Assembly (NCBI RefSeq): GCF_052425735.1 | Contig: NC_135771.1 | Coordinates: forward strand, 4,526,001-4,590,000 | Source: Oculina patagonica | Lineage: Eukaryota | Reading direction: 5' to 3' | Length of the DNA stretch: 64,000 nucleotides | Part shown: positions 1-63,828 of the stretch, piece after piece | Layout of the letters: each line of letters begins with the position of its first letter | How positions within the stretch are numbered: position 1 is the first letter of the stretch | Made by a program: the position numbers and the translations under genes | The notes under the pieces: model-generated | What the model was told of the DNA's origin: nothing | Seen by the model: only the letters and a program-made list of their open reading frames with translations | Databases searched by the model: none

Positions 1-45
1 CTTTGTTTTAAGTCACTGGTGAGTTTCAGAGGTTCTTACACTGAG

Positions 46-308
46 AGGGGTATCAAATGGTCTTTGCGAGCATTTGCGCGCATGCGAGCACAGCGTTTTT
101 CTTTGCGAGCACGAACATTGACAAAAAATAGCCTTGCGAGCAACGAGCACTTTTCAAAAAGTAACCCCACTTAAAACCGAGCATGCGAGCACTTGTAAAA
201 ATTTGCGAGCACGAGCAAACGAGCACCCACTAAAATTTTGCGAGCATTCCGAGCAAAAGCTTAATTTTGCGAGCACTGCGATATTTTGAGGGACCATTCA
301 TGACCCCT
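46..308. mobile_element. MITE-like element with internal GCGAGCA repeats
   Basis: Imperfect TIRs AGGGGTATCAAATGGTC / GACCATTCATGACCCCT; flanking direct repeat ACTGAG. Confidence 0.7.
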
Positions 309-550
309 ACTGAGGTTTCCCCGAATTTTGTCCTTTGTGGATTATGGATTAATGGATTGCCTTTTGCAACACGATCAAGTGTGCTGTAAGTTTGTATCAG
401 TATTCATCAGTTTTCGGTGTTCGTTCTGTACTTTGGTATTTTCCTGTTTTGCATTTTAAGTTGAATCAAACAATTGCAAAAGAATATATTTATCAGACAA
501 CACAATCAATTTGAGGAATGTTTCCAAACAATAAAGAAGATGTCGCAAAC

Positions 551-754
551 CTTAAAACGCGTGCTTTGACCAGATCCGTATCTTCGGATTCTCATTCGGT
601 TTCCAAGAGGCGCACGTGACTTCTGGACAACACGTGGACTGGTCCTACGCCATGGTCCGTTGCACATGTCAATAGTGACCACGTCATTGTTCTCACGGAT
701 AGCCACACCACAGTTACACACCACTCGCCAGCAAGGCCAGATACGTGCATGCAC
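551..754 (-). CDS. VWD domain exon (VWDE-type)
   Basis: 204 nt; VHARIWPCWRVVCNCGVAIRENNDVVTIDMCNG, matching the VWDE-type FEVH.R.W.C..CNCG..E..D.V..DMCNG pattern. Confidence 0.88.
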
Positions 755-3700
755 CTAAACAGGAACACACTGGGTTAAAGACATTTTTTTCTTCAAGAAA
801 TAAATGATTTAATGTAGATTGTGAGTAATCACCTCCCAGCTTCCGATAAAACAAAACTTCCTGTCATCCGGGATAATGCTTTATGGGGTTTTAGCATGAA
901 AGAGAGGCCAGCGTGAATTTAACCCTCTTTCGCTGATGTTCTCAACAAGCCGTCTCAGTCAAAGTAACACACACATACTTTAACAGAAAGTTGTGATTTT
1001 CGATGTTCACTAAGTGCAAACGCCGCAACATTATCTCACAAAAGACTTTCCTTAAAACGTCATTACCCAGACCTATACTCTCATAGGCAATAGTTCTCGG
1101 TCCGTATAAGCGGTGCGCAAGAATTCTGCCAGTAAAGTTAAAAAAAGAGTAACCGTACCTCGAAGTTCCTCCTCAAACTCTTTACCATAACGTAAGTTCC
1201 AGCGTTCCTCAAAATGTCGTAATACCTAAGATAAGGACAGCACACAGTTGAATCAGTAACTAGTTATACAGAGAAAACAGTATTTACAAGTATTGTCCAT
1301 CAGTTTTGTCCATAATTTTCGAAAGTTTGTATTGTCCATTTCCATTGTCCATCAATTTCCTAAAGCTTTTTTATACTTTTGTATTGAGTTTTTTACCTGA
1401 CATTTAATTTTGGACTGTTTTGAGAGGTAAATGGTTAAAATCAAGATTGACTTACTTGTTATCAAACGTTCGATAATGTGGATCTCCAGTTCCTTGACAT
1501 TTCTTGGCACCCCTGTTGGACGTTACGACCTAGAAATCAAATCAAAAATTGTTTGGATGAACACGATGCACACATAAAAATGCTTTTTTCATTGTTGTTG
1601 TTAGTATAAATGTAAAAAAGGCACGGTAGAAGGAAATTGAGTCATTCTTAAGCCCCTGGCCAGCGGGGGTTACTAAGTCACTGGATGTCAGCAGCTTGCA
1701 TGTAGTTCTATAAAAAGGTCATCTAACTTCCACCATAACTATCACGAGAATAATTTAACCTGAAATAAGCCCCCCAACTATTTGCCCGAATTGTAAAACC
1801 CTTTTCTGTAGGGTTTGTGTGGTGCTTTATGCCATCACAGTATGTTCATAGACTTTTGATGTCCGTTTCAAGACTGCAGAACAGAACTTGCTTTTTTTAG
1901 AATCATTATGTTATGTTTTTAAGAGTTTTGATTTTCGGCTTTTGATAACCAGTTACGGCGCCCAGTATTCTTTATTCAGGCGCAAACAACCTTCCAAATT
2001 TAAGGTCAATTATTTATGAAAAGCAAAATGCCACACCAAAACTTAAGGTATTGGTTTTTTTTTTTTTTTTTGGGTTTTTTATTTTTTTTACATGTTAAAT
2101 CAATTACTTACCCTGATTGGGGGAAGTCTATATCCCTTCCAAAATCCACAGAGCCCAGGTGTGGACCTTATAGGACTGAAGTGAACTCGGATATTTTGTC
2201 TTCTCAGCTTCCTGAAATCTCGCACAGGTTTAACATAAAATCCATAATTCTTCCTATTTCTTTCTGTCAGCGTCATTCGGCACCTGTCAGTCACGAAACG
2301 CGTGTGAGATTGAAGCTTTACAATAACAGCACATCTCCTGCGACCGTGACATCTGATTGGAAGGAAACTGCGTAGTTTGATTAGTTTCCAACCCGACGCG
2401 TCCGTCATTGAAAGCGTCTTAGGGTGAACCTGCAAAAAATAATACAAGTGAATTAGAGAGATGAAAAATTAATTTCTTCATCGAATCACACAGCACAGAT
2501 ATAACTCGCATGTTGATTTGCTATCGAAGCGAGGAATTCTATTTCGACACCAGTCCTACTCACTAGTGAGTCACGTAAAACATGCGCAAGCAACTCGAGC
2601 GGTCGGTGTTATTTTTCGACAATGGGGAATAAAAACGACAGATTTGCCAAGGAGGTGGAGGACGACCTACTCAAAGACGATCAAGATCCGTTGTGTTGTT
2701 TGTTTACGCTACGCATCATGAAAAGAAACCAAAGGAATTAGTCTCAGTAAGAATTTTTTTTAAAAAAACTGTTGAACGTAACAAGAAAATAGGATTACTA
2801 TCAAAGGGAAACAAGGATAAAATTTCATGATAAAAATAAAAAACGTTACTCTGGTTAAAAATTGTTATAAAATGTTCGTAAAATGTCCGAAATGTCCCAA
2901 CGTTTCGGCTTAAACTTAAGTCTTCATCAGGGGAAAGTGATAAGTGAATTTACAAAAATAAATATTTATTTCTTAAGATATGCGATTCCAGGAAACTCAC
3001 TCAAATAACCGATTTCGTGTAATGCCGTATGGTGCGATATCGGTTTGCGTGAAATTCACTCCCTGTGCAATGAAATTTCTTGTATCAGTACACAGTCAAG
3101 TAGACACTAGTATGTAGAAAATTACTAAGGAAATTTATTTCAAGCTAAGTATTGAAAGGTGCGATTTAGACATTACCTTGATGCCTGTGAAAAGGTCTTT
3201 ACTTCTCGTGTTCATCGTCCAATCCTTTCCACTGGAATATCTTGCCCTTACTCGGCATGCGACCTTCAAGAATCCAATGCAAAAGCATTACATTGTTATT
3301 TAGATTACAAGACGAGAAGAAATGATTAGCCAGTAAGAAGTTATTTATCACTGTGCAGGGTTGGGCAAAATATCGTTCTTTGTCATTGTTCTTCCAACTG
3401 AGCTTTGAGGCCACGCATCAGAAGAAGGGCAATTCAGTGCGAGTTCTTATTTTCCGTGAAATAATAGAATTGTACTAGAATTGATAATCGTGACAATAAA
3501 CGAAATTTATTTGAAGCCTTGGTGAAGCACACAGCTGGGCGAAACAAGAATTCATATTTGAACTGCAAAAAGATGTAAAGAGAAGAAATGATCCTTGCAG
3601 AAAAATTGCAATTTAAAAAATTACATAGAAAGAAGCCTGAAAAAATTCAGGCTTCAATGGTAGGATTTGAACACGCGACCTACGCGATACCGTTGCGATG

Positions 3701-6700
3701 GCTCTACCAAACGAGCTATGAAGCCACACATTGGGAGAAAGGACCCATTAGTTAAATGTTCTAGTCTAAATCAAAAGGCCAAGTAAATCTACAAACCGTT
3801 GTTCCAGCTTTGAAGCCATACGTGTTCTCCAACAGCTCAGCATGAGTTCCACGTACAGTTTCAGTTTTAGTCACTCTCTTGTTCACAATCCATTGCACAC
3901 GTGCTATAAATCGACTCTTTCTTCTTCCCCGGATGTTAAAGTAGCAGCGGAGCGCAACCTTGGAGCAGCCACGGCCAGGTTTAATGACAGCACGGACGAC
4001 AGGTCGGGAAATCACAGGATAATCTGACACATGTCAATCAATCAATCAATCAAATAATNNNNNNNNNNNNNNNNNNNNNNNNNNNNNNNNNNNNNNNNNN
4101 NNNNNNNNNNNNNNNNNNNNNNNNNNNNNNNNNNNNNNNNNNNNNNNNNNNNNNNNNNNNNNNNNNNNNNNNNNNNNNNNNNNNNNNNNNNNNNNNNNNN
4201 ATTAAAATGAATCAGCTTATTAATTATGATGAAATATCTATGCGTTTAAAAAAGCCGGCTACGTCGTAAATAGTGAATCTTGCAGGATTAAAATCGACCA
4301 CTTCGTTTTTATTGAGTTGAGCTTTTCCGTTAAGTCTTTTCATCCTCACCTGCGCGACAACCATACACCTCAACTCTCATAGATATATGAGCGTGCCAAG
4401 ATCTGGGGTTAAACCTTACAAAGCGTCCGTTAACAGCTGGGTCGATTGGTTGTTCTACCAGTGAGAACCTGTCAAAGTTGCCTCGGAAGAGCTGAATATT
4501 AAAAACAACAATTCTTTGTAAGTCATGACATACATAAAATTAAGATGTTTTAACAAGCCTACCCCGAAAATAACCCTCCGCCACGTCATTTCAAAAAGAC
4601 CCAAAAACGCGTCAAACATACCGCCGCCAGCACCAATAAAAGCCCAGTACATGTATTCAGACTTGCACCTGAAATTTTTCAGACACAAATTCCCTTTCAA
4701 AGTTAAGTACACCCGTTTTTCGAAACGCAAAATTCATTCCAGTAATAACACTCACAAAAAGCCTTTCGAAAACAAGCGCAATAAAAAGAAAAAATCACCC
4801 GAGGGTTTTGACGTATATTCAGAATTTGACAGTGCGTTTGATGACACTCTTGCAAACTTTGAGCCTTACGATTCAATATTTTACAAAAATAACACTCTAT
4901 TTCACAAACCTTAATCTTTCCTCCTTCCTTGATTGGCAAGAAAGTCCTTCCATTCTGACTGTAGTACAGATAGTAGTTCCTGACAAATTGGTTTGCATCG
5001 TACCTCCCCTGAGTGGTGACTTTTGTTATCCTGGTGGGTCCCCTAAGGTCGATCTGTAGCCATTGGTTACGGTCATTACGTCTTGCACACCACGCGCCCA
5101 CGAGACGACCTACACGTCTGTAAATGTCATAACAAAGATTATTTTAACTTAGCATTCAACTATAATTTAAGATCATAGCAAAACCTATCTTGAAACTCAC
5201 GTACCTTTTGGTACCTTGTCAAGAACCTTGCGTTTTTTGTCAGAAATTGATTTTTAAAATACAGACTTCAAAACGATTGCCCAAAATTCTTTAAACTTAA
5301 ATTATGATTTGTAGCTTTTTTCTCGCTTTGTTCCATTCCCTGGCAGCTCAAATATAAAGTCCAGTGTGTATCGACGTCCTTAAAAATGCAAGTCCAACTG
5401 TTTCTTTATAGATGCAAGGGCGTTAAAACTATTTCCCTCGAGCGTGAAGCAAAAAGAACGGATTTTCCACGGCCAATTTTCAACTCGCGCTCTTTCTCTA
5501 TTCGCTTCACCCTCGGGACTAAGAAAAGAGGGACTGCTCGCAGTTCAAGGGAAGTGACAGGCAAAGAGCTTACTTGTTGTTGAGCCGAGCCCGAGTTGGA
5601 TTATGGTTTTTGTCCCACTGTGAAGAAGCTCTGATAGCATGGTTTGGAATACGGCCACTTTGCATTCCAAGAGGTTGGAAGCACATACGGAACATAGCTA
5701 ACAAAGATACAACAAATACACAAGAATAAATCAGTTTAGGCACAAATCATTGATCGAACTTTTATGAAGCAACTAAAGAGGCAAGAATAAGTAAAAAATT
5801 AAAAAAATGGTGCCCTTTTTACGTAGCCTGATGCACAAATCTGATCGATTCTACCATTGCTTTTTGTTCGCTGATAGAACACAATTATGCGCGCGTTTTT
5901 CTTAGAAGGGAAAATTGTTCTTTTTTTTTGGCTTAAAAATACGTAAAATTGTAGCTTTTGGACTGCAATCCTTTATAGTGTCTACTATAACCATGAGGCT
6001 TCTCTCCCGAGGTTTCTTTGAGCAAAAGTTAAATCGGCTGCATGCGCTTCGTTGACTATTCGCTCATAGAAAACTCGGGCTCGCAGTCAAGTTGTTAAAT
6101 AAAATAAAGCCAACAAAGTGCACTGACACGTCAAAACAGTGCTTTCAAAGCCTCATGCAAAACGACTGCACGACCAATCAGTGCGCGGGTTACACGGTCG
6201 ACATTTTATAAACGTGAACAGCAATACTTTCAGACGTTCACGGGAAAGCACTCTTTGTAAGTGAAATAAACAATTTCACCTTTAATGAGAACAATATGTT
6301 TTGATGTTTGTTTGGTTTTTCTTACCTTTATTGCAGCCATAGAGTTCTACTCGCATAGAGATATGACTACGCCACTGTTTGGGATATACACGAACGTAGC
6401 GAGCTTGGAAACTGGGGAAGAGGCGATTATAAACAACAGTGTTCCTATCGCTGTTACCAGGGAACATCTAAGAAGGGAAAAAACACAATCAATTAATCAA
6501 TCAGTCAGTCAGTCGGTCATTCAGTCAGTCAGTCAGTCGGTAAGTCAGTCAGTCAATCAGTCAGTCAATCAGTCAGTCAGTCAGTCAGTCAATCAGTCAG
6601 TCAGTCAGTCAGTCACTCAGGTCAGTCAGTCAGTCAGTCAACAAAACAAAACAGAAAAAATCAAATCAAATCAGGGGTAACATATCTTTGAACGATGAAT

Positions 6701-9700
6701 TCCCCACCCCCCCTAACACGGAGGAAAGCGTGTGAGATCGACAGAAAAAAAATCGATACTGATGACGTTGCTCTACAAAGGACCATGAAGAGTCTCTGAT
6801 TGGTTGTTGATTGGTTTCCAAGACACTGAACGGTATGAAATTTTACTGGTCGCATGGAGAGAACTAAGTTTAGGCAGAAAGCTCAAACAGGATGTTCAGA
6901 AAGCAATTTGGCCACTTACGAAGCAATACATGACCAAGAAAAGGGTTCTTACTTCAAAGTGTAACAAAAAGCATGCAGTTCCTACCTTAACTTTTCTGTT
7001 GATGGCGTAGAACTTGAACTTATTGCCATACAAGCCGTAGCTAATCTCGTATTTCTTCACCCATTGGTTGGCATCGTATCGACCTTGCGTTGCCACAGCA
7101 ACAACCCTTGTCACCTGACCAAGGTTTATCTGAAGCCACTGGAATACGTTGTTATATTTCGATGACCAGGCACCAGTGCCTCCGCGGTTGAGGATATTTA
7201 ATCGGGCTCTGTACGGACCATGTCGCCAATCCCACATGGATGATGACGTCATGGAGTACTTTGGAATACGCCCATCTTCAAGACCCAATGGAGCCCCGCA
7301 TGCACCTGTAGAGGAATAAATATACATTACGATTTCTGCTTTCCTTCATGCTAAGGGCTGCTTCACAAACAGTCAGCCCAAGCTTACAGTTTGAACTTCA
7401 TGTAGCCGTCATGGCGATTGTATTTATAGATTTTGTATGAGAATTTCACTTCAGTTCTCGAAATGCTAAATACAACAATGAGTGTGGAAATAAACTTCAC
7501 TTACCTCAATGTGGGGTTGTTTTTTGTGTCTTCTGTGTAATACAGGGTAATCTAGGGCCATTTGAGGCGAGTTTTTTATTTGGTCACTCTTCGGTGTAGT
7601 TTCCTCTAAGAGATCGTGTAGTTCCTAGAGAAAACTACACTGAAGAGTAACGAAATCAAAAACTCATTTCGGAACTGAAGTGAAATTCCCATACAATGGC
7701 TATAAATACAATCGCCTTGACGGCTACATGAAGTTCAAATATTGCAAGCTTGGGCTGCCTGTGGTTCACACGAGCGATGTGAACCACAGAAAAAGTACGT
7801 GTGAACTAGGACAACGTAATCGCTTTAAGTAAGTAAGTCACAGTCACAAACAAAGACATTTTCACACAAAGACAAACAAAGACATTTTCACACAGCAGTA
7901 AAGAAACGCCAACTTTCGTTACCTAGAGCACAGCCAAAGACCTCGACTCGCATGGAGATGTGACTTCTCCAGCCCCACGGGTGGAACCGAAGGAAGCGAG
8001 CTCGAATAGACGGGATGATTGAATTGTAAACTATAGTGTGTCTGTCACGGTTGCCACGGAAATACTGTAAATAAAAAGTCAAATGTCGTTAAAAAAAAAA
8101 CACAAGCTAAAAACAACTTAGGGAACAGGTTACTGATAACAAGATTCCAATCCCACAAAATTGGTTCTAAATTGTTTACATCTATCCCCACAAAAGTGCC
8201 AAAAGTGATATGAAACATGCACTCAAGATAGAGATGGTGACACACAGACTTCAGAATGTGGGTCTGATATGATGCATTAATATATACCGTAGAATTCCGG
8301 TTATAAGCCCTGGGCTTAAACAACTTCGTAAGGGTTTTTGGGTGGGCTTATAAGCGGAGGGGCTTATATTCGGGAGGGCTTATAAGCGGAAGGAAAAAAA
8401 CGTTTCGAAACGAGCCTCGGGAGTGTTGATCGAAATACGTTTTTAAGTTAAAAACGCACAAAAAAGCAACATTTAGCCCTGTTCAGTACTGTCATCCGGT
8501 AGAGGGGGGCTTATATCCGGGGGGGCTTATAACCGGATGTATTTTTTTGTTTCCAAGATGATGGGCCTATAACCGGGGGGGCTTTTAAGCGGGGGGGCTT
8601 ATAACCGGAATTTTACGGTATATGTCTTTCGTGCATAACAGACATAAAAAAACAGGATCGGACGATATGTCAAGTAAATAATCTGTCATGTAATTCAGTA
8701 ACTACTGTTTTATTAGTCACTTCGGGCAAAAGATATATCCTTCATTTACCTTTAGAGCGAGGGTAAGACTCAGAGAACATACCGAAAAATTGATGTGATG
8801 CTTCCCCCCCCCCCCCTATATATTTGAATTCTCATGCTCATAGCATTGTGCTCACTATATAAATCAAACGGTAATCTGAGTGGTCTTACTATCAAAAATA
8901 AATTTCTCACCTTGTCTCTGGAGTTCTTCCTGTATCTAGCAAAGTGTACTCCATCCACACTGGATGATAGGTAGTATGTGGTCACCCATTGGCTAGCCAT
9001 AGCTCTACCCTGGGTACCAACTCGTATTATCTTCGATATTCGGCCAAGGTCTAGTTGCAGCCATTGATAACGATTGTTGTGCCTATGAATTAAGTTGAGA
9101 AAATGTTATATAAAGATTGTTTTTTAAGAATTACTTTTATAATAAAAACGTTGAGGCTGACATTGGCTTATAAGTTTATACTAAAGTTTTAAATAAGGCT
9201 GAGAACGCGTCGGGCATCTCTGTGTTTCTTGCTTCTCGTGAAGACAAAGTAACCGACATTCTTGTATGACATATGCTTCTTAGTACAGCTTACAAGGCTC
9301 TTCGATATATTTCATGGTCTATCCGAATTCGCCTTACTAAAATGCTATACTACCTTAAGAACGTTTTCAGGTTCAACTTTCTTTAATAAAACGGGGGAGA
9401 GAGGTCCGTGTAACGGCATCTTAATCGTGTTCTGTGCCCTGAGAGATTTTCCCCGAATGCAAAGATCAATTTTGTTTACAAGGAAAAAACAATAAAAGGC
9501 TTGTATAACCTGGCTGACCAAGCGCTTTGGTATCTGCCCATGCGTCGTGCATTAAGCCTGGCTAAATATGGACCATGATATTTATCCCACATGGATGACG
9601 CTGTGATGGCCGAGTTTTTAATGCCTCCCGTCATCATGCCAAGTGGTCGATTGCACATATGTCCTGCAAAAATAAAATCATCAGTAAACATGATGATTCA

Positions 9701-20820: not shown

Positions 20821-20863
<43 letters not shown>

Positions 20864-53800: not shown

Positions 53801-56800
53801 GAAATTCGAGGTGTTTGGATAGCTGATAAACACTGTCTCGGGTGTTTGATATACGGGGTATCTTCTCAATCGAAACAAAAACTACGGAGTAAACAGAGAA
53901 ATAAAATCGTAAAAAAATGTCCTAATTAAGACCGGGTATCCAAACCTTCTTCACAGTACGTACCATTGAAAAAATATTTTAGATCGGTCCTTGTAAACCA
54001 TTGGAGCTCTTGCAGTCTAACATGTTGGATCATGTTTTAATGACAAATCAGATATATAGACAGAAGCTTCTAACAATTTTTGGAAAAACAGCTATTGTTA
54101 ACATAAAGATTTTAATAGTGCAGCTTACAAGCCTAAAACTATTGTCCATTTAACACTAACCAGCTCTGCATCCATAGATTTCCACTCTCATTGAGATATG
54201 ACTTCGCCATCCCCACGGGTGAATTTTGATAAACCGAGCATAAACTGCAGGATTAAGAGCTTGGATTTTGATGCTGTTTTGATCATTGTTGCCACGGAAA
54301 GTCTGAAAAGAAATCATTCCACATGAATCATACATGTAAATACTTGCAACTCAGAGCACAACATTAATGAAAAAAATTGCTTCTGTGTTACAGGTTTCTA
54401 CAGTTCTTTCTCGTTTCCATGTTAAAATCCAAATTCATTTTTTTTCATGTTTCTCTTAAAACCTACGTAAAACCTTTCATCTGATTTTTATTTAGCAAAA
54501 AACCTTTATCGCCGTTCTTGATGCACCTCAGGAAAAATAGACGAACGCACAAAAAAACACCCTTGAAACCACGCATGCACAAAACCACACCCTACTCTAG
54601 TCATAATGTAGCCCTTGATTATTTCACTTGGAAATATCCAACTTCCATGGTCGCTATTCTTTGCAAGGTTCTGTATTTATCACATTTTCTCACCTTGTCA
54701 CTGTTTTTGAATCGATACACTTGCCAATGAATGCCATCTAAACTTGAGGATACTCGATAGTATGTCACCCACTGAGCAGCGTCCTGTCTCCCCTGAGTGG
54801 CTATCTTTGTGATTTTCATTGCTCGACCGAAGTCCATCTTAAGCCACTGATTTTTGTTGTTGTGCCTTGCGCACCAGGCTCCAACATATCTACCTCTCTT
54901 GTGGTGACCCAGTCTCCCAAGTCTAGCCGCATGGTAAACGTTGTATTCTGAGGATGCCGTGATTCTGTTGTTTCGGAGACGACCATTTTGTAATCCCAAG
55001 GGAGTGCTGCACAGTGCACCTGGAAAAACAATATCAATATCATTAACTTTTTAACTCTTTTTATTACTGTTGGCAGACATTGGTCGTTTTCACACTAGAA
55101 GACAGACAAATCGTCTCGACGGACGAGTCGTCTGACGATTTGTTCGTCTAGTGTGAATTTAAGACGGATTTTGGACGACTTGTCCCTCTCGATCACCAAG
55201 TCGTCCTCAAAAAATAGTCATCCTAGACGGACAAATCGACGGACAAATTCAGACGACTTGAACATCTAAAAACGTGTCCGACCCGTTTTCATACAAAGTT
55301 GATTTGTCCGTCTCAGACGATATGTCTGTCTAGACGATTTGTCCGTCTCCAGTATGAAAACGGCCATTAAGCCTATACCAACAAAAAAGCAAATTTGTAT
55401 TGTGCCATTTCAACTTGTTAATGATTGCAGATTTGTAATGATTGCCAAATTGAGGTAGCTGGGATGGCCCATTGGTCATGTTGAATTCCACATTCAATCA
55501 GCCAAGAGTGTTCAGAGTCATTTAGCACAATGTGAGGTTCCAGAAAAAATCCATACCCACACCACAGTGACTTACTGGAAATTCCTTTGGGGAGGGGGTC
55601 TCAAAAGCCAAAACGTTTAAAGGAAAGTATGAAACTAAACTGGAATTTCCAGTGGAGTGAGGGAGGGGAAGGGTGGGATCGACAATCGTATTTAGGGCAA
55701 TCTTTTATTTTTGCACATTTGGTTAGCTCACTAAGGCTACCGACGGCTTTCTTCCAAAAGGAATTAAAAACTAAGAAACTTACTTGTACAGCCAAAGAGT
55801 TCAACTCTCATTGAAATCCAACCGTACCATGTTCTTGGATGGATTCTGACATAAGCAGCACTGAATGGCTTCAAGAAACGGTGATATACTACAGAATGTC
55901 TGTCACTGTTTCCTGAGAAAACCTACCACGGAAAAATAATAATCTGTCATTAATATTGTAAGCTAATATAAAAAAAATTATAGTATGGTTAATGTTTAGA
56001 CTTGTTCTAGCCAGTGTGAATTTTAAAATAAATAGATGAATGAGACAAACTATATACAAACCTAAACCTTAACATTGTTACAATATCTGTATCTCGAAAA
56101 GGTCTTTTTGACAGAAGACAAGCGAAACGTTTTAGAAACAACACAACACTTTTAAGGAAGACTATTTAATAGTCATTATCAGTCCAAGAAAAACAACAAT
56201 TTTAACGTGTTTAAACGTGCCGTTTCACCATGTTGATTTAAAACTCTTTAAAGTACTCACAATGACATAGTTATGCACTCTTTTGCTGCCTTGTCACAAA
56301 TTAGCAACGTAATTCTAAGTTTATTTTATTTATAGTCATTTGAAATTCAACTTATTAATATATTTCGTAACTGACTTCTCACAGTAGGGACTGTCGAACC
56401 ATGTCTTTTTCAAAACTCAAAAGAGATGTGTTGTGTTGTTTCAAACCCTTTACAGCAAATATTGCATGTAAGTGACAGAGCAATTTGATACGAATTCTCG
56501 TATGACAACTGCTGCCCTTTAAAAGCATGAGAAAGTACTGGTGAATAGTTTCAAATCTGCTAACCAAACGATGCTCATATCATAGTAGTTAGAATATTCA
56601 TTAGCCTATACTTATTAATTAACAATTGCATTCAAAGTCTTGTCCAGAAGACAACCTTGTACCCACGCCAAAATCAGCTACTTAAAAAACGCGTTTTTAC
56701 GCAACACTCTAGTTATTACGTGTAAAGATTTATCATACTCTTACCTTGATGCGTCGGTTTTCTCTGTAGGGAACGTAGCTTACACCATCTCGACTATATG

Positions 56801-59800
56801 TCACTATATAGGTCTTCACCCATTGGTTGGCATCTTGTCGGCCTTGTGTTGCTATTCCTTTAAATTTTGTTATATCACCGAAATTAACCTTGAGCCACTG
56901 TTTGGTATTTCTAGTGCGTACACTCCAGGACCAGCGGTGGTTCAATCTGCCATGCCATGGTGAAAGGTGGTGGTTGTAGTAGGTAGAGGCTGTTATATCT
57001 CCTGGAGTGAGACGCTTGTCTTCTAAACCAAGAGGCATGTTGCAACGGTCTGCAAAGTAAGATGAACAAAATGCAATGAACAAGTAGTAAAAGTTAAGAC
57101 TAAAGGAAAATTTACAAAGAACCAGAGAAGGGACATCCTGGGTACCAGAGGATTTTTCTCGCACGCAGCGGATTACTCTTCAGCGGCCGACATGACCGAC
57201 ACCAGAAGCTGTGCAAGAAAAACCTTTGTCACCAAGGGTAGAGAAGGGAAGAAAGGAACAAACAAATGGACAAACAAATAAGCCTGCCTCTCCAGAAAGG
57301 GGTGAAAGGAGGGACGGAGGGAATCAGGAAAACATTTCATTTAAACTAGAATGACTAACGTAGAATAAGTTTGGGGACTATCATTAAGAACCAAGATTAT
57401 TATTAAAATAGTGGTATTATTAATGGTTGTATGAGAAAAACATCAAGGCCAACGATGGCAACCAATAATAATGTGATTAAACCTGGGAAACAGTATTGAT
57501 AGTCATGTCTAGATAAATAAAGTAAAAAAAAATTATTCACACCTTCAACGCATCCATAGAACTCCACTCTCATAGAGATGTGTTTATACCATCCCCAAGG
57601 TCGAACCTGAATAAACCGTGCCTTGATTGGTGGATAGAACCTGTGCTGTACCACTGTGTTTTGGTCTCGGTTACCTTGGAAGTACTAAATAAAAAGAAAC
57701 AACGAAAATTATAAAGGACACATAGCTAACTTCAGAAACATTATTTATCAGGAATCCTTGACCATAATGAGAAGGAACATTCCGGTTGGTCCAAATTTTG
57801 CAATATCGTAAGCTTAGGTGAACCACGCCCAAAATAGCTTAGCTGACCCAGTTTGGGTTTTTTGAAGCATTTTGCAAAAGAAAGCAAACTTCATAATAAG
57901 TGGAAGCGTTTTTTTCACATGTCTGGCCAATGATTTTGGTTTAACATCTGGGAAAGAAGCTTCAACTTCACGATGCTCAACACAGCTATGCAAATTTGCA
58001 GATAATAGATGCCTTATGTATCAGCAAAGTTATATTGTAGAAGAGCCCTTAATTGCAAAATGAATTTGAACACAACGAATTTTTCCCCGATACAAAACAC
58101 ACACTAGCACAATACAACATCTACATATAAAGGTAAATACAACAAACGTACCTTTCTATTGCTGTTTTCTTTATACTCAGCGAAATTTGCACCATCTTGA
58201 CCGTATTTAACGAAAAACCGTGTCACCCACTGACGTGCGTCTTGTCTTCCTTGAATAGCAATCTTCACTACACGCATGGAGCGTCTGAAGTCCACTTGTA
58301 ACCACTGGTAGTGATTATTGTGGCGTGATGACCACGCCCCAGTCCTCGCGCGGCTTCTACGCCAATACAGTCTGGCATTACTTGGTCCATGATTTCGATC
58401 CCACATGGAAGATGCTGTGATTTGATTGGCACGAACGCGGCCATTTTTCATTCCTAAGGCTTTGTCGCATCTTGGGCCTATTGTGGGAAGAAAAGGCATG
58501 TGTGAGTATTGTAACTAAACTTAGAAAGTTATAGAAATATATATTTAGATACAAGCAGTTTATTGAAGTTCATTTTAGAATCAAAATTAATACAAAAACA
58601 AGAAAAGGATAAAAGAAAAGAATTCATAGCTTAATTGATTAGCTTTGCTGATCTTGATCACCACTATTTAAACATGAAACCTGTGACATTATTAACCCCC
58701 TATCTAGTCTTTCTTAGTTGTGTGATTGCGCGCATAAAGGCAAGAAAGATAAACAAATTTAAGAAATTGACACTTATGATTACATTATATATACATAAAC
58801 CTACCAATGACGCAACCATAGAGCTCAACTCTCATGGAGATCCAGCTACGCCAGGTGACAGGATGTATCTTGAAGTAACGACCCGCCAGTGGTCGCATAA
58901 ATCGGTGCCTTACGACTACATATCTGTCAAAGTTACCTTGGAAAATCTGGGAGATAAAAAAATAGACCATAAATCCACAAGTTTTACTCCTTTCTTATTT
59001 CAAGCCTCAAAGTATAATAATTGATAAACCCCCTTCTCTATTATCAGCACATAAAACAGCCTCCACTGAAAATTATATAAACCCCCTGGCTGTCCCTACA
59101 ACCCTCTCTAACAAAATCAAAAGTGAAAGAAAAAAAAGTAAAACATGTTTTGTAAAAACTTATTCTAAAATACGCTTAGTCTGGTCTTCTTAACCAGTCC
59201 AGAGTTTGAAATATAAACTCTTCTTGCTGCCTTTTTACTTACAATTTTATTGCTATACACTTTTTTATGTAAATTTTGAGAATTTGGTGAAAAATCAAGA
59301 TGAAAATCCCTCCTTGTGACCTGTCTCCTTGGATGGAAGTAACGTTTTTAACTTACATTTGTCTTAGAGCGGTTTTTACTTGAGTGTGGAAAGTAATTCG
59401 CATTTGCTTTGGTTTTGCATAACTACGCTTAGTGATTGGTTTAAAAAAAACTTGCGCCACTTTCGCAGCCAATCGAAAGTATAACCAAAAGCAATTGTGA
59501 TTCGCGTGCGCCCTTTTCCCGCGTATTTGCTTGGAGTTTTGATTGATTAATTCGATTGTCTGTATTCTTTGTGATTGGCCTGAGTGATAACTTTGGTTTT
59601 GGTTTTACGACACTCAATCGAAAATCGCGCTATATCCTTTTCCAGAACACTAACTAACCTTTGTTCTTCTGTACTCCTTATAGGTCACAAACCGGAATCC
59701 CTTGACACTATAAGATACATAGTAACTTGTGACCCACTGGTCGGCGTTCTGTCGACCTTGAGTAGCAACTCGTGACACACGAGTAAGCCCTCCAAAGTCA

Positions 59801-62800
59801 ATCTTGAGCCACTGGCGTTTGTCATTTCGTTTCGCATACCACGCCCCTCCAAGCCTACCCACACGTCGCTGGTGGAGCCTGGCGTTTCTTGGTGCACCGT
59901 AGAAGTTGTAATATGAGGAAGCCGTGATGAGTTGGGCAGGGACACGGCCATCTTCCAATCCAAGAGGAACGTCACACCTACCTTTATTAAAGAAATGAAA
60001 ATCAGTTAAGTGGACATCAAGGAATATAAAGAAATTCTCCACTTAATGAGAACAATAATTTATTGGACAATTTTTGAAGACCAGATTTATAGGAGATTAA
60101 CTTCAGCATGTTCAAGTAGTTGAACTTCATGTAAACAGCAATCTGACCATCCGAAAAAGATGTTACATGTACCTCAACCAGATTGCAGTTTCTACGAAAA
60201 CAATTAGACAACGAGCCTTTGCTTTCTATAAACGATAATGAACTCGGCTTCGCCTCGTTAACTATTCGCTCAAAGAAAATTCGGATTCGTACTCTTGTTC
60301 TCAATAAATAGCGCACATTAAGGTCTTTTTACTTACTCCATGCGCCAGCAAACAGCTCAAGTCTCATTGAGATATGTGAACGCCAGCCACGTGGGACGAT
60401 TTTAACGAATCGTGCATACAAGGGAGGGTTGAATGAGCGAGTTTGAACACCATTTCGATCGTAATTTCCTTTGAAAGTCTAAATACAGTACAACAAAAAG
60501 GAAAACAAACAACAGTCAAACAAATAAAAGAGAGTATAGAAAAGTAAAACAAGTTTACGTTTCCCTAAAAATTTACCTGACTTGCAAGATTAATTATCAT
60601 TTCTGCAACCATTTCAATCTAGTCAAAAATCTAATCATCCTTACTTGCCCATGACTTTCAAAATTTGTGCTTTTATAATGTTACACAACAGAAAAGTGCC
60701 AGAACTGGTTACAAGTGCTATGACCGACGTGTATACCTTCCTCATTGTACTGCAATAAGCTCTTTGCAGAACATGGTCATGGGACAAGGGGTAGTGCAAA
60801 ATGATTCCCAGAAACACAAAGAGCACGATGAAATAAGTAAGGTTGCCCTTTTCGAGACTGCTGATGCTTAAACGTTAGATTTTATAGTAGTTTAAAGGCT
60901 TTAAAAGTTTAAAGGATTTGTATGGAAAGAGTTGCTTGATGGCAAGGCTTGCCCTCCAGTATACAAATCCTCAAATTTCAAAAACATTCAAACCACTATA
61001 AAACCTCACACTTACGCATCAGCAGTCTCAAAATTAGCAACCTTTAATTTCATCATGTTCTTTTCATTTTTGGCAACCATTTTGTCCTACCGCATACTTT
61101 TATAATTGACAAGATCACGTGATCGGTTTTCTGCAAAGGGCCTATTACCCCCAAAATCATCTGCTTTGAGGAGAACACTGCCTTTGTATGAAATGCACAG
61201 CTGTAAATTTCGTTTTACGATTTGACATATTTTATTACTGTCAACCAAAATGAACACAAAAAACACTTACCCTGATGTAATCCCACCAATATGTGACTCT
61301 AGAATAGTGAACTCCATCTAAACTGTAGTAAACATAATAGGCAGTCACCCATTGGTCTGCATCTTGCCGTCCTTGTGTTGCGATACCTGTGACCTTGGAT
61401 GACCTTCCTAAGTCAATCTTCAACCACTGGTTGTGGTTGTTATGGCGGGAAGCCCATGAGCCGATGTAACGACCCTGCTTTGCAATATGCAATCGGGCAC
61501 GGAATGGAGCATGGAATTTGTCCCATTGGGATGAGGCGGTCATGGCAGCATTCTTAATTTTACCACTTTGAATACCTTGGACTTGGTCACAGAATCGTTC
61601 TAAGGAGAGAATTGAAAAGGATATTGCATTTCACAAATCGCTGCTTTTTGTCTTTAGACTACAGGGCTTTCATTAAGATTTTAGTGTAGAGCAAAGAGCA
61701 ATAAAAGAAACTGACATTATCTCCCCTTCACAGGAGCTGCACGAACGTTATCCGGCAAATCACGAGAGGATACCCGCCGGAGCTCTGGTGGGTGCCGGGT
61801 CTTACTGAAAGCCCTAGAGACAAAATAACTTACTAGAAACATTTTTCAGCGTGAACTTTAACCGCTGCAAAAGCCTTACAACCAACATTTGACTTTTTTA
61901 ATTTTAAGGCTAGTTGCAAATGTAACTATTGCATTTCATAGATTTTAGCGACTTATTTTTAGCATAATTATCATTTTTCAAGTTTTTAATTCTGGGTGTA
62001 ACATTTAAAGTGGGTGGGTTAAAGTGGGTTAAAAATTTTTTACTCATAAGATATTGTAATCTAGCTATTTTTATGTAATCTAGCTATTTTACAATATCTA
62101 GATATTGTAATCTAGCTATTTTACATGCTTGAGTGAAATAATTGATCGTCAAGAAATCCCGCTCGCAAATTGTACTGTGATAATTACATAATACACCCAA
62201 ATTTGTCTGAGTTGAGTAACACAAATAGAATTTAGCCGGAAACATCGTCGATTTCGTTTTAAACGCGTTACTTTTTTTAATTTTCATGTAATTTCATTGA
62301 GCTTACCTTTATACCGACAACCGTACAATTCTACTCGCATGGCAATATAACTGCGCCAAGTCTTGGGATGGATACGTAGAAAACGGGCCTTGATTGCTGG
62401 GATTATCTTGAAAGAAACTGTGTTGTAGATATCGTAGTTACCACGGAAAACCTAACAAAAAAGGAAATCATGGTAAAACCGAGTTATTCAGTTTTCAAGC
62501 ACGCACAAGCACATCTAAACATATATGCAGGTCCTGATTGCAAAGAACTTTCAGAAAAAAAATCAAAACTGGGGCTTCAGTGGGATTGAAACGCATGACC
62601 TGTGTGATATACTAGTGTAGTGTTCTACTGTAACTACCTTGAATAATAAAGCAAGTTCATTTTAAGTAATTTTCACTTTTGTGCCGAAAGTAGTTCGCGT
62701 TTGGTTTAGTTTTGCATTACTACGCTTAGTAATAGCATAGTTAATGGATGGTAAGAGAAACCTGCGCTGCTTTCTTAACCATTCAGAAGTAAAACTAAAA

Positions 62801-63828
62801 CCAATCAGTGTTTTCCCGCGCTTCATGCCGGCATATTTTGCTTCAAGTTTTGATTGGTTCAGTGGACTGTCCGTGTCCTTCATGATTGGCAAAAAATGAT
62901 TACTTTGGTTAGAGTTTTACAACACTGGATTGAAAACCGCTCTATGTAAACACAATAACTATAAACTGGTGATAATGTAAACGTTTCATTTTCATATCAC
63001 CAAGCATGCTGCAGTACCAGAAAGAAAAGCTGACAAACCAACAAGTACACCGTGTGTGGAAAAAACAGACAATCGGTTTTAAACAACTCTAAACAGCATC
63101 TCACCTTAATCCTGCCATAAGCTACATATGGTCTAAAGCGCAGACCCTTCGCGCTATAGGACAGGGTATAACTTTTCACCCATTGATGGGCTTCTCTCCG
63201 TCCTTGTGTAGCGATTCCTTTGATGATACTCATCTGCCTCAAGTCAATCTGTAGCCACTGCCTGTTGTTTCGATATTTTGCTACCCAGGCCCCTGTTCGT
63301 CCATGGCCGGCGTAGATGTTAAGACGTGCTCGGTCAGGTCCGTGATTGTAGTTATAAGAAGACGAGGCTCGTAGATGACCCGACAGGATACGACGGTCTT
63401 CCATACCAAGCGGCATAGTACATTTGTCTGTAAAAGCAAACATCCAATATTGATTTTAGGCGTGCAAACCAAATGTCAAATTTGAATTGACATTTTTAAA
63501 ACCTTTTTTAGAACAAATGTTAATACAAAGGTGATAGAAAAAATGATTATAAGAAAAATCTAAGCAAAGAATCTGAATTTAAAACAAACTTTCCCAAGGA
63601 TGCACATGAAAAGAATGATAATGCTAATGATGAGATGTTTGGGGGTTTTAATGCTTGTCACAAAAGTTACTCTCTTTGCTTTGTACCTGTTAGGCAACCA
63701 TAGAATTCTAATCTCATGGAGATATGTCTGTACCATCCCCATGGACGAACGCGGACGTAGCGACATCTGAGGGCAGGGATGAAAGGATGACTGACAACTG
63801 TATTCTGGTCTCGGTTGCCTGAGAAATA
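551..63828 (-). CDS. Partial giant multi-exon gene: >=35 tandem discoidin (F5/8 type C) domains followed by a VWDE-like Ig-like + VWD module; 5' and 3' ends outside window
   Basis: 80 exons with GT/AG boundaries and compatible phases. Repeated motifs C..PLG..DGR/NGRI..ASS..ARL..GAW..QWLQ.D..TQGR..QWV..Y.SYS.DG and F.GN.D..ARF.R.HP..W..HISMRVE.YGC. No start or stop exon seen between modules. Confidence 0.9.
1159..1225 (-). CDS. VWD domain exon
   Basis: 67 nt, phase 2-0; YYDILRNAGTYVMVKSLRRNFE. Confidence 0.85.
1456..1529 (-). CDS. Start of von Willebrand D domain
   Basis: 74 nt; VVTSNRGAKKCQGTGDPHYRTFDN, matching the VWD signature C...GDPHY.TFD. Confidence 0.9.
2112..2429 (-). CDS. VWDE-like region, exon 3
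   Basis: 318 nt; VHPKTLSM...LPIRC...PVRDF...FWKGYRLPPIR. Confidence 0.85.
2895..2934 (-). ncRNA. Minimal hammerhead-ribozyme-like motif (Penelope-type remnant)
   Basis: TCCC-CTGATGA-A-GACTTAAGTTTAAGCC-GAAACGTT-GGGA. Confidence 0.55.
3177..3263 (-). CDS. VWDE-like region, exon 2
   Basis: 87 nt, phase 0-0; VACRVRARYSSGKDWTMNTRSKDLFTGIK (resembles the VWDE S..FFAGIK segment). Confidence 0.8.
3633..3737 (-). mobile_element. tRNA-derived SINE head fragment
   Basis: Reverse-strand tRNA-like A/B-box sequence; related fragment at about 62555-62630. Confidence 0.5.
3797..4023 (-). CDS. VWDE-like region, exon 1
   Basis: 227 nt, phase 1-0; DYPVISRPVVRAVIKPGRGCSKVALRCYF...GFKAGTT. Confidence 0.8.
4059..4200. 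other. Assembly gap
   Basis: 142 Ns, preceded by (TCAA)n. Confidence 0.99.
4350..5697 (-). CDS. Discoidin D35 (last of the array, extra intron)
   Basis: Exons 5574-5697, 4910-5117, 4350-4491. Confidence 0.9.
6326..7305 (-). CDS. Discoidin D34
   Basis: Exons 6986-7305 and 6326-6467. Confidence 0.9.
6487..6640. repeat. (CAGT/CAAT)n microsatellite
   Basis: Tetranucleotide tandem repeat. Confidence 0.95.
7370..7761. mobile_element. Foldback MITE
   Basis: TIRs of about 60 bp (CAG.CAGCCCAAGCTT..TTTGAACTTCATGTAGCCGTCA.GGCGATTGTATTTATA) plus an internal hairpin. Confidence 0.75.
7923..9663 (-). CDS. Discoidin D33 (type 8-like, extra intron)
   Basis: Exons 9510-9663, 8911-9082, 7923-8064. Confidence 0.9.
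8287..8618. mobile_element. Tc1/mariner-like MITE
   Basis: TIRs CCGTA.AATTCCGGTTATAAGCCC, TA flanks, internal GGGCTTATA repeats. Confidence 0.8.
10073..11444 (-). CDS. Discoidin D32 (type 7-like, apparent +1 frameshift)
   Basis: Exons 11121-11444 (324 nt; 323 expected) and 10073-10214. Confidence 0.82.
10506..10752. mobile_element. MITE with 9-bp TSD (Mutator-like TSD size)
   Basis: TIRs containing GTTAGTGGGGGCGAAACGAAG; TSD AACCTCCTC at 10497-10505 and 10753-10761. Confidence 0.8.
10795..10965. mobile_element. CAGTCAAC-ended mariner-like MITE family
   Basis: TIR CAGTCAACT...AGTTGACTG, internal GTGTCCGTCTTA repeats; relatives at 24257-24339, 25531-25702, 28946-29121, 35312-35440. Confidence 0.75.
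11972..13158 (-). CDS. Discoidin D31 (position 6 of the unit)
   Basis: Exons 12827-13158 and 11972-12113. Confidence 0.9.
12471..12745 (-). mobile_element. tRNA-derived SINE
   Basis: Reverse-strand tRNA-like head (GGTTCGAACC B-box), core GTGTCTTGCCCAAGAACA and GGTACCCATTTATACACCTGGGT tail region. Confidence 0.7.
13427..14543 (-). CDS. Discoidin D30 (type 5-like)
   Basis: Exons 14242-14543 and 13427-13568. Confidence 0.9.
14100..14237. other. Assembly gap
   Basis: 138 Ns. Confidence 0.99.
14655..14695 (-). ncRNA. Second minimal hammerhead-like motif (degenerate)
   Basis: ACC-CTGATGA-T-GACTTAATTTAAGTC-GAAAAACGTT-CGGGT. Confidence 0.45.
15040..16191 (-). CDS. Discoidin D29 (type 4-like)
   Basis: Exons 15866-16191 and 15040-15181. 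Confidence 0.9.
16239..16515. repeat. Two degenerate copies of an interspersed repeat
   Basis: GTTCA..GGAT..TTATCCACTGGATAAATCGCTAT..GATAGT.ATTTATCCGG present twice. Confidence 0.55.
16697..18098 (-). CDS. Discoidin D28 (type 3-like, extra intron, apparent +1 frameshift)
   Basis: Exons 17919-18098 (180 nt; 179 expected), 17187-17330, 16697-16838. Confidence 0.82.
16922..17228. repeat. Tandem duplication (about 160 bp) including the D28 exon 3' end and donor
   Basis: GATAAGCAAGTGTTAAGTA.TTCGAGA..ACGTTACCTTGATTACTCT..TTTCTGTGTA..AACTAGAGCC present twice. Confidence 0.85.
18513..19628 (-). CDS. Discoidin D27 (type 2-like)
   Basis: Exons 19303-19628 and 18513-18654. Confidence 0.9.
20400..22399 (-). 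CDS. Discoidin D26 (type 1-like, extra intron)
   Basis: Exons 22221-22399, 21159-21302, 20400-20541. Confidence 0.9.
23124..24122 (-). CDS. Discoidin D25 (type 8)
   Basis: Exons 23797-24122 and 23124-23265. Confidence 0.9.
24763..26151 (-). CDS. Discoidin D24 (type 7, extra intron)
   Basis: Exons 26001-26151, 25258-25429, 24763-24904. Confidence 0.9.
25531..25702. mobile_element. CAGTCAAC MITE copy
   Basis: Alignable by eye to 10795-10965; TA flanks. Confidence 0.75.
27029..28667 (-). CDS. Discoidin D23 (divergent type 6)
   Basis: Exons 28360-28667 and 27029-27170. Confidence 0.9.
27495..27746. mobile_element. MITE/foldback
   Basis: TIRs ATCCACCGTA..GAAAAAGATGGC / GCCATCTTTTTCCATACGGTGGAT. 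Confidence 0.65.
27907..28326. mobile_element. Non-autonomous DNA transposon with CCCGGG(G)n ends and 8-bp TSD
   Basis: TSD AACTTCTG at 27899-27906 and 28327-28334; internal inverted ATACGGGGAGGCT motif and AAAGGGGTA repeats. Confidence 0.8.
28946..29121. mobile_element. CAGTCAA-ended MITE
   Basis: TA-CAGTCAA...TTGACTG-TA. Confidence 0.7.
29307..29850. mobile_element. PIF/Harbinger-like MITE
   Basis: Near-perfect TIR of about 45 bp, GGGCCTGTTTACATGATTCCGGAATGACTTTCATTCCGGAACGA. Confidence 0.8.
29891..31424 (-). CDS. Discoidin D22 (type 5)
   Basis: Exons 31135-31424 and 29891-30032. Confidence 0.9.
30928..31050. repeat. Palindromic interspersed repeat
   Basis: AACAGTTATTCCACTCGCGCTTG.TGGATATGA...TCATATCCAACGCGCGTTCGTGTAATAACTGTT. 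Confidence 0.65.
32106..33216 (-). CDS. Discoidin D21 (type 4)
   Basis: Exons 32891-33216 and 32106-32247. Confidence 0.92.
33891..34906 (-). CDS. Discoidin D20 (type 3)
   Basis: Exons 34584-34906 and 33891-34032. Confidence 0.92.
35520..36538 (-). CDS. Discoidin D19 (type 2, WWD)
   Basis: Exons 36210-36538 and 35520-35661. Confidence 0.92.
36801..37641 (-). CDS. Discoidin D18 (type 1)
   Basis: Exons 37319-37641 and 36801-36945. Confidence 0.92.
38054..39539 (-). CDS. Discoidin D17 (type 8)
   Basis: Exons 39214-39539 and 38054-38195. Confidence 0.92.
38367..38708. mobile_element. Kolobok-like MITE
   Basis: TTAA flanks, AG..CT termini, TIR AGATGA.TTCCAGTCCGTACTGCGCA. Confidence 0.75.
40776..41831 (-). 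CDS. Discoidin D16 (type 7)
   Basis: Exons 41509-41831 and 40776-40917. Confidence 0.92.
40993..41171. mobile_element. Kolobok-like MITE
   Basis: TTAA-AGGAGCAATGTCA ... TGACATAGCTCCT-TTAA. Confidence 0.65.
42076..42208. repeat. Hairpin repeat
   Basis: TATTGACCAAGCTTGTTCGGTCAAGATAGCTGGATA ... TATCCAGCCATCTTGACCGAACAAGCTTGGTCGATA. Confidence 0.7.
42299..43232 (-). CDS. Discoidin D15 (type 6)
   Basis: Exons 42907-43232 and 42299-42440. Confidence 0.92.
43437..44468 (-). CDS. Discoidin D14 (type 5)
   Basis: Exons 44164-44468 and 43437-43575. Confidence 0.92.
44982..46029 (-). CDS. Discoidin D13 (type 4)
   Basis: Exons 45704-46029 and 44982-45123. Confidence 0.92.
46667..47641 (-). CDS. Discoidin D12 (type 3)
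   Basis: Exons 47319-47641 and 46667-46808. Confidence 0.92.
48288..49124 (-). CDS. Discoidin D11 (type 2, WWD)
   Basis: Exons 48796-49124 and 48288-48429. Confidence 0.92.
49475..50222 (-). CDS. Discoidin D10 (type 1)
   Basis: Exons 49900-50222 and 49475-49619. Confidence 0.92.
50557..51499 (-). CDS. Discoidin D9 (type 8)
   Basis: Exons 51174-51499 and 50557-50698. Confidence 0.92.
51678..52009. mobile_element. PIF/Harbinger-like MITE
   Basis: TTA TSD; TIR AGGCCTGGCT.AA.TAGGAA. Confidence 0.75.
52393..53494 (-). CDS. Discoidin D8 (type 7)
   Basis: Exons 53172-53494 and 52393-52534. Confidence 0.92.
53708..53950. repeat. Interspersed repeat (inverted relative near 22850-23063)
   Basis: Shared ATTTTTGAC.AA.TTCGAGGTGTTT core. 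Confidence 0.6.
54161..55019 (-). CDS. Discoidin D7 (type 6)
   Basis: Exons 54694-55019 and 54161-54302. Confidence 0.92.
55081..55366. mobile_element. Harbinger-like MITE
   Basis: TIR TGG.CGTTTTCA.ACT.GA.GAC.GACAAATCGTCT. Confidence 0.7.
55784..57049 (-). CDS. Discoidin D6 (type 5)
   Basis: Exons 56745-57049 and 55784-55922. Confidence 0.92.
57543..58477 (-). CDS. Discoidin D5 (type 4)
   Basis: Exons 58152-58477 and 57543-57684. Confidence 0.92.
58805..59981 (-). CDS. Discoidin D4 (type 3)
   Basis: Exons 59659-59981 and 58805-58946. Confidence 0.92.
59365..59632. mobile_element. TAGAGCGGTTTT-ended MITE family
   Basis: Copies also at about 38938-39199, 52876-53127, 62665-62944; shared GAAAGTAATTCGC.TTTGCTTTGGTTTTGCA and GATTGG motifs. 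Confidence 0.75.
60337..61599 (-). CDS. Discoidin D3 (type 2, WWD)
   Basis: Exons 61271-61599 and 60337-60478. Confidence 0.9.
60755..61147. mobile_element. Degenerate foldback element
   Basis: Inverted arms GAGACTGCTGATGC/GCATCAGCAGTCTC, GGATTTGTAT/ATACAAATCC, TTTGCAGAA/TTCTGCAAA. Confidence 0.65.
62307..63427 (-). CDS. Discoidin D2 (type 1)
   Basis: Exons 63105-63427 and 62307-62451; DKCTMPLGMEDRRILSGHLRASS. Confidence 0.92.
63687..63828 (-). CDS. Discoidin D1 (type 8), second exon only
   Basis: 142-nt exon YFSGNRDQNTVVSHPF...HISMRLEFYGCLT. Confidence 0.9.

Follow-up and report, generated by a model that had tools for sequence, protein, structure and literature searches.

The 64,000-nucleotide stretch of Oculina patagonica DNA analyzed here (referred to as the window) is probably the middle of one very long transcribed coral gene, the product of which would be a giant polyvalent extracellular scaffold for anionic ligands. 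On its minus strand, the window contains the final third of one F5/8C (discoidin) domain, D00, followed by 34 complete ones, D01-D34, and directly after this array come six exons, T1-T6, of 326 codons in total. From the letters alone, 35 consecutive discoidin domains in a protein of more than 5,600 aa had been predicted, and our gene model of 5,631 codons agrees with that prediction. Among the discoidin arrays in the literature that we searched, this one would be the longest by a wide margin. The building parts of the protein are known, and what is new is the number of domains, the conserved cycle of eight, the extreme charge and the avoidance of N-glycosylation sequons.

Gene model and cycle of the discoidin array

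The window has 39% G+C and two runs of N (4059-4200 and 14100-14237). Of the ten longest minus-strand ORFs, nine matched PF00754 (F5_F8_type_C), scoring 54.9-70.5 bits where the cut-off is 28.2, and the matches of these exon-A ORFs always covered the first two thirds of the profile. A custom profile built from the nine matching ORFs detected 34 first-part exons (exon A), five of which are split in two, and an all-against-all comparison of the remaining ORFs detected 35 copies of the last third of the domain (exon B). In a related coral (described below), one exon B matched positions 86-127 of the PF00754 profile. For the five split copies of exon A, the donor/acceptor pair was picked that kept the frame and gave the best profile score, and the pair chosen for D34 was the joint subsequently found in RNA contigs.

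The resulting model on the minus strand comprises 80 exons, all GT..AG, with a total length of 16,895 nt (5,631 codons with two extra bases discounted). The 74 discoidin exons follow an unbroken phase 1/phase 0 pattern, with no stop codon and no signal-peptide exon among them: exon A is entered in phase 1 after AG and ends with AAG|GT in phase 0, and exon B is entered in phase 0 and ends with ..YGCxxG|GT in phase 1. Eighty phase-compatible exons had been predicted; their number holds, but exon A1 of D27 and exon A of D31 are each one base too long (see below). The array starts in the middle of a domain at 63828 and therefore runs on past the right edge of the window, which is also as predicted. 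That the exons form one unit is supported by RNA continuity for D33, D34 and the exons after the array, and by phase logic, selection and orthology for the other 32 domains. Ten plus-strand ORFs of the window had no Pfam match, so no second gene was seen in the window, and an Rfam scan of the window gave no match. The parts of the array are as follows.

63687..63828, minus strand: D00, exon B only (last third of a discoidin domain), from self-comparison and the orthologous exon in the relative; its exon A is past the right edge
50557..63427, minus strand: D01-D08, one eight-domain super-repeat, from Pfam, the custom profile and phases
63427-63105, 62451-62307, 61599-61271, 60478-60337, 59981-59659, 58946-58805, 58477-58152, 57684-57543, minus strand: exons of D01-D04
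57049-56745, 55922-55784, 55019-54694, 54302-54161, 53494-53172, 52534-52393, 51499-51174, 50698-50557, minus strand: exons of D05-D08
38054..50222, minus strand: D09-D16, second super-repeat, 16 exons, from phases, identity and tree
23124..37641, minus strand: D17-D24, third super-repeat, 17 exons, with exon A of D23 split into 26151-26001 and 25429-25258
7923..22399, minus strand: D25-D32, fourth and most diverged super-repeat, 19 exons, with exon A split in D25, D27 and D32
4350..7305, minus strand: D33 and D34, exons 7305-6986, 6467-6326, 5697-5574, 5117-4910 and 4491-4350, with three joints in RNA contigs

The exon A lengths of D01-D08 are 323, 329, 323, 326, 305, 326, 323 and 326 nt, and those of D09-D16 are identical. 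D17-D20 and D24 hold the same period of eight, and D21-D23 depart from it (290 nt, 308 nt and the split exon). Domains eight positions apart (lag 8) had 62-67% protein identity and those at lag 16 had 60-66%, whereas other lags gave 42-50%, and even lags were about 6 points higher than odd lags. In a maximum-likelihood tree, odd domains were split from even domains with a support of 98/98, and the domains formed clades by position in the cycle; the tree required 8 label changes, compared with a minimum of 7 and with 24.7 for shuffled labels. D25-D32 was the outlying copy in the position clades that were resolved (six of eight; positions 6 and 8 were not resolved). The domains are eight position-specific types arranged in a fixed cycle, forming an eight-domain super-repeat.

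Between copies of the super-repeat, pS was 0.59-0.89 (saturated) and pN was 0.13-0.38, and in a DNA-level self-comparison only exons aligned between copies, the introns being unalignable. The array is therefore old and held by purifying selection, and it is no assembly artefact. Assembly collapse or recent duplication was ruled out on the same grounds, the copies also differing by 16-45% in protein.

The extra introns in exon A lie at 26000-25430 (D23), 22220-21303 (D25), 17918-17331 (D27), 9509-9083 (D32) and 5573-5118 (D34). They occupy four different positions in the domain, D23 and D32 sharing one, and those of D27, D32 and D34 are found at the same places in the relative, suggesting independent old gains in single repeat units. 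The only notable self-similarity outside the exons was an interspersed repeat family of 71-75% identity present in four introns (59373-59633, 62670-62945, 38944-39194 and 52878-53117).

Transcription, the module after the array and the orthologous locus

Logan contigs of four runs (X1, X2, X3 and X5) were compared with positions 1-6000 of the window. The label "RNA?" of these runs is an automatic guess, but spliced joints can come only from RNA. The contigs contained nine GT..AG joints, three of which involve exons of D34 (5574|5117, 4910|4491 and 4350|4023) and six of which fall within the tail, among them 3797|3263, 3177|2429, 2112|1529, 1456|1225 and 1159|754. Contigs of X1, X5 and X3 joined 4350 straight to 4023, with CT..AC ends that read as GT..AG on the minus strand, and thus contain the phase-1 junction by which the array had been predicted to join the next module. 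One X1 contig of 1,925 nt, reaching past the left edge, ran through exon 754-551 up to 5697 and carried a further 463 nt, which is within 1 nt of the combined length of the two exons of D33 (462 nt). A single spliced transcription unit thus extends at least from D33 to past the start of the VWD domain. Contigs of X2, X5 and X3 extended past 551 into sequence outside the window, indicating that the gene continues to the left.

In each of the four runs, contig depth reached tens to thousands at 1-400, 2839-2949, 3600-3800 and 5800-6000, where variants and loose ends were numerous, and the adjoining intron sequence had zero depth. These stretches look like widely transcribed interspersed repeats.

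The exons after the array are the following.

3797..4023, minus strand: T1, first exon past the array, phase 1 in and phase 0 out, basic, with no family match; in RNA, and 78% identical in the relative
3177..3263, minus strand: T2, 29 codons; in RNA and in the relative
2112..2429, minus strand: T3, 106 codons, conserved in a small group of genomes only; in RNA and by phmmer
1456..1529, minus strand: T4, probable start of the VWD domain, with GDPH at 1487-1476; in RNA, with GDPHYRTFD kept in the relative
1159..1225, minus strand: T5, VWD continued; in RNA and in the relative
551..754, minus strand: T6, VWD continued, ending with AAG|GT at 551; in RNA, and 90% identical in the relative

T4 carries C-Q-G-T-GDPHYRTFD (GDPHYRTFD at 1487-1461), which fits the start of a VWD domain. 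T1-T3 are a basic linker of about 210 residues, followed by a probable VWD domain that starts with GDPH, and the whole is spliced in phase 1 to the array. GDPH is a self-cleavage motif present in a subset of VWD domains, and self-cleavage of the coral protein would be predicted here from the motif. When the tail ORFs and exons of the window were scanned singly against Pfam, no match was found (about 115 aa of T4-T6 against PF00094). The original prediction had expected Pfam to find discoidin domains and then VWD on these exons; the former appeared, as the nine PF00754 matches, and no VWD match was obtained within the window.

T3 was searched with phmmer against 1.84 billion representatives, which gave 14 matches and no VWDE; the matches were short ORFs on genomic contigs, with 34-88% identity, and two spurious repeats. 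An AlphaFold model of T3 with 12 homologues was unusable (pLDDT of 44.6), and ESM Atlas searches with T3 and with the Vwde exon of the relative gave scores of 0.67-0.69 and no lead. A search of PDB sequences with T6 returned a chance match only.

One T3 match, P0005, led to a 379.6-kb gap-free contig in the ENA assembly of a related coral, and T1-T6 recur on this contig in the same order with 62-90% identity. D27-D32 have 1:1 orthologues there, with exon-by-exon collinearity that includes the positions of the split exons (D27, D32 and D34). Searching with D01 gave P0019, which is 94% identical and was the entry to the D01 orthologue of the relative, and D01-D06 were found to be collinear at 81-94% identity. 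Comparison with other cnidarians had been proposed with the prediction, and an orthologous, collinear locus was found in a related coral. At least 15 further domains precede D01 in the relative, with the cycle of eight kept and the array still running at the last examined base; there are at least 49 domains in this first array and at least 61 on the strand.

Exons following T6 were sought inside the window and were absent, so they are located left of position 1. In the orthologue, the exon after T6 matched PF00094 at positions 121-151 of 156 (28 bits versus 22.9), and the lengths of T4-T6 and this exon sum to one VWD domain. The next exons of the orthologue have a match to PF26129 (Vwde), which was precomputed only and was not reproduced with the Pfam copy used, and then an EGF exon, which matched EGF_Teneurin (27 bits versus 24.3) and EGF_2 (23.9 bits versus 22.1). 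The predicted likeness of the module to VWDE is thus borne out in part: the orthologous locus has matches to the end of the VWD domain and to EGF, together with the precomputed Vwde match, but in the window there is no Pfam match to the module and T3 finds no VWDE.

Downstream of its EGF exon, and on the same strand, the relative has 12 discoidin domains that lack both flanking cysteines, the last of which continues into a Pro/Arg-rich segment with a donor site. Between T6 and this second array, strong splice sites of compatible phase can be chained together, which is suggestive of one gene, and the VWD module may be internal, given these downstream domains. Since the transcripts run past 551 and the relative has these 12 further domains, the module is probably not a terminus. 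Neither end of the gene was reached in the examined part of the contig of the relative. We consider it quite possible, though we lean against it, that two genes are present, the first ending soon after VWD-Vwde-EGF, left of the window, and the 12 cysteine-less domains belonging to a neighbor gene, which would make the VWDE-like part a C-terminal module. The second array is a distinct subtype without both flanking cysteines, and the splice-phase chain is one of several possible, which would fit two genes. Against this, however, the chain of strong, phase-matched splice sites from T6 to the second array is complete, the distance from its last candidate exon to the next discoidin exon is about 0.9-1.4 kb, which is not unusual for an intron here, that interval showed no signal-peptide ORF with a leading ATG, and the first domain of the second array has an acceptor and no start.

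The gap-free contig of the relative was also compared at the two assembly gaps of the window.

4059..4200, no strand: assembly gap 1, inside intron 4349-4024 between exon B of D34 and T1
14100..14237, no strand: assembly gap 2, inside the D29 intron, beginning 4 nt past the donor AGG|GTGA of D29 exon A

No exon is present in the intron of the relative equivalent to 4349-4024. D29 reads through, with 90% and 98% identity to its orthologue, the exon of which ends with an identical donor. Both gaps are within introns.

Other features of the introns were noted. At 6285-6680 there is an intronic short tandem repeat that, on the plus strand, reads (SQSV)n in one frame, and a repeat of similar (SQSV)n type lies in an intron of the orthologous gene (stretch L011 of the relative, about 20680-21050). 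In the relative, one discoidin domain has its exons A and B separated by a 4.6-kb intron in which a gene for a 349-aa rhodopsin-type GPCR (7tm_1; L010 500-1549, minus strand) is nested on the strand opposite to the array. The same intron also contains an ORF fragment (L010 2379-2714) that, by eye, resembles the end of a retrotransposon reverse transcriptase.

Composition, comparison with known proteins and possible function

D01-D34 (5,256 aa) have a pI of 10.8, with 886 Lys+Arg against 288 Asp+Glu (net +598) and 12.7% Arg, and every single domain has a pI between 10.0 and 11.5. Only 1 N-X-S/T sequon was found in D01-D34, compared with 32.9 +/- 5.4 expected from within-domain shuffling, in which the count never fell below 17 in 2,000 trials. 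The relative has 0 sequons against 28.4 expected and a pI of 10.8 in its first array, and 0 against 10.0 expected and a pI of 11.5 in its second array. High positive charge and scarcity of sequons are common to the window protein and its coral orthologue.

A cysteine at the start and one at the end of the domain, which form the disulfide pair of the factor V/factor VIII C domains, are both present in 33 of the 34 domains. D02 (60337-60350) alone is without the closing cysteine, having ..ELFAGAW instead of ..ELYGCPW; this cysteine is missing from the D02 orthologue of the relative as well (..ELFGGPW), which makes it an old loss. A protein would have reason to avoid sequons only if it meets the glycosylation machinery, which argues for secretion, and from this avoidance and the flanking cysteine pair we infer that the product would pass through the secretory pathway. 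No signal peptide or N-terminus was reached, in the relative even 15 domains upstream of D01.

By sequence, the closest solved domains were the C domains of factors VIII and V, followed by those of CASPR2, neuropilin and lactadherin (E about 1e-22 to 1e-11). The coral domains share the flanking cysteine pair with factors V/VIII C1-C2, lactadherin and neuropilin b1-b2, but factors V/VIII, lactadherin and neuropilin have two domains per protein and, unlike the coral protein, no polycationic array. Hemocytin/hemolectin and SCO-spondin are giant secreted proteins that have both FA58C and VWD domains, with one or two FA58C domains among many module types and no long homogeneous array. VWDE has the order VWD, Vwde (PF26129), EGF that is also indicated, with the precomputed Vwde match, in the coral orthologous locus outside the window; it is not known to have a discoidin array. 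Titin and nebulin repeat a single fold many times, with position-specific types recurring in a conserved higher-order cycle. They are intracellular, consist of Ig/FN3 or nebulin modules and are unrelated in sequence to the coral protein, so the likeness is one of analogy only; the coral array would place a higher-order cycle of this muscle-ruler kind in an extracellular lectin-type fold.

For cnidarians, a literature search found neither a long discoidin array nor a fusion of discoidin domains with VWDE described, and in a preprint on Acropora tenuis, VWDE-like and factor VIII-like genes appear only as entries in a list of differentially expressed genes. We found no paper describing such an architecture, in keeping with the original view that it had not been characterized. 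The accompanying statement that known FA58C proteins carry one to a few such domains understated the range, since Nectin has six and Sfp1 has four (PMC7037938). Nectin of Paracentrotus lividus is a secreted 108-kDa protein of the tube-foot adhesive; it consists of six tandem discoidin domains only and has galactose and GlcNAc glycans as ligands (PMC7037938). Sfp1 of Asterias rubens (426 kDa, 3,853 aa, 5% cysteine) has four discoidin domains together with vWD, C8, EGF and lectin domains, and this very large secreted protein cleaves itself into subunits that are joined by disulfides, its role being a cohesive one (PMC7037938, PMC12817120).

By analogy, Nectin and Sfp1 would be the proteins working most like a coral scaffold. 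The likeness to Nectin is by domain content; the coral protein differs in having at least 35 domains (at least 49 in the relative), the eight-domain super-repeat, the VWD module and a hyper-cationic composition. Sfp1 and the coral locus both combine discoidin, vWD and EGF domains, again a likeness by domain content only, but the coral protein is dominated by discoidin domains, has 1.6% cysteine, and no C8 or lectin domain was seen in it. Judged from these sequence features, the protein may be a long multivalent extracellular scaffold in which the many cationic discoidin loops would bind and cross-link polyanions, such as sulfated mucus or matrix glycans, acidic matrix proteins and anionic membranes. 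The VWD/Vwde/EGF part could supply GDPH self-cleavage and disulfide-mediated assembly, as in mucins and Sfp1. The charge, the avoidance of sequons and the GDPH-VWD would point to a function in coral mucus or matrix, in adhesion or in calcification, all fields with few defined large scaffold proteins.

There is a modest chance that the protein is instead a soluble or surface pattern-recognition agglutinin, which would bind anionic lipids or microbial surfaces in the manner of lactadherin and function in the handling of microbes, symbionts or apoptotic cells. The domains of factors V/VIII and lactadherin bind phosphatidylserine, and the extreme positive charge of the coral array suits anionic membranes. 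However, the cycle of eight conserved over at least 49 domains, the purifying selection and the 1:1 orthology look structural, whereas immune recognition arrays are usually fast-evolving. The present data do not separate an agglutinin from a scaffold.

A bolder form of the scaffold reading, which we regard as speculative and rather doubtful, is a single polypeptide of about 10,000 residues or more, in which a VWD-Vwde-EGF core would stand between an array of at least 49 disulfide-clamped discoidin domains and one of at least 12 cysteine-less ones. With its cycle of eight, its charge and its complete avoidance of N-glycosylation, such a protein would be a periodic polycationic template and act as a molecular ruler that orders polyanions in corals (acidic skeletal matrix proteins, sulfated mucus or another anionic polymer).

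Frame breaks and the annotation of the gene

After 4,116 open codons, the reading frame breaks. Two single-base breaks were located.

18045..18051, minus strand: frame break 1, a single surplus base in exon A1 of D27, after the RRIAN and before the ITASS codons
11402..11404, minus strand: frame break 2, a single surplus base in exon A of D31, after the SRL and before the PDVSFTASS codons

Exon A1 of D27 (18098-17919) is 180 nt long, where 179 or 182 would fit, and exon A of D31 (11444-11121) is 324 nt long, where 323 or 326 would fit. Base-by-base alignment to the orthologous exons of the relative, which are intact and in frame on its gap-free contig, revealed exactly one surplus base of the window in each, near 18048 and near 11403. 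Past each break, at the ITAS codons, lies an internal ACAG|C acceptor that is in phase, and only through it are the two exons phase-compatible, which is probably how the phase compatibility of the original prediction was obtained. A k-mer look-up of 60 nt around 18048 listed no run, with only two words sampled.

We consider it likely that both breaks are assembly indels. It is improbable that the gene is instead broken in this coral, with real insertions in D27 and D31 that either make it a young pseudogene or leave a product in which those domains are skipped or truncated; such a state would agree with the presence of both breaks in the assembly, the internal acceptor just downstream of each and the lack of a listed run around 18048. 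However, that look-up was based on just two sampled words, the flanks of each break are highly conserved and stop-free, the downstream exons are transcribed and spliced, the orthologous exons are intact, and the 5,631 codons are otherwise without a stop. If both breaks were real, the long frame would be interrupted at D27 in this individual.

Automated annotation had been expected to fragment the gene, and in Orbicella faveolata this was what we found. A spliced model of 182 aa, P0024, annotated as "coagulation factor V-like" and 91% identical, splices the end of D00 exon B to the two exons of D01, A and B, in turn, using junctions identical to those of the window model, and it gives independent support for these junctions. 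It begins inside D00 exon B and ends by reading into an intron, and its neighbors on the scaffold are models of 178 and 276 aa. A giant gene broken by coral annotation into "coagulation factor V-like" fragments would mislead expression and proteome studies.

That the array consists of several independent short "lactadherin/factor V-like" genes, or has internal promoters, would agree with the Orbicella models of 182, 178 and 276 aa and with RNA continuity in the window from D33 onward only, but it is very unlikely, given the 74 discoidin exons without a stop codon, signal-peptide exon or phase break, the strict cycle of eight conserved between species over at least 49 domains, and the fragmentary nature of P0024 itself. 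About 8 kb upstream of P0024, two discoidin gene models were observed on the opposite strand (L012 1-1805), representing either an inversion, a scaffolding error or another discoidin gene.
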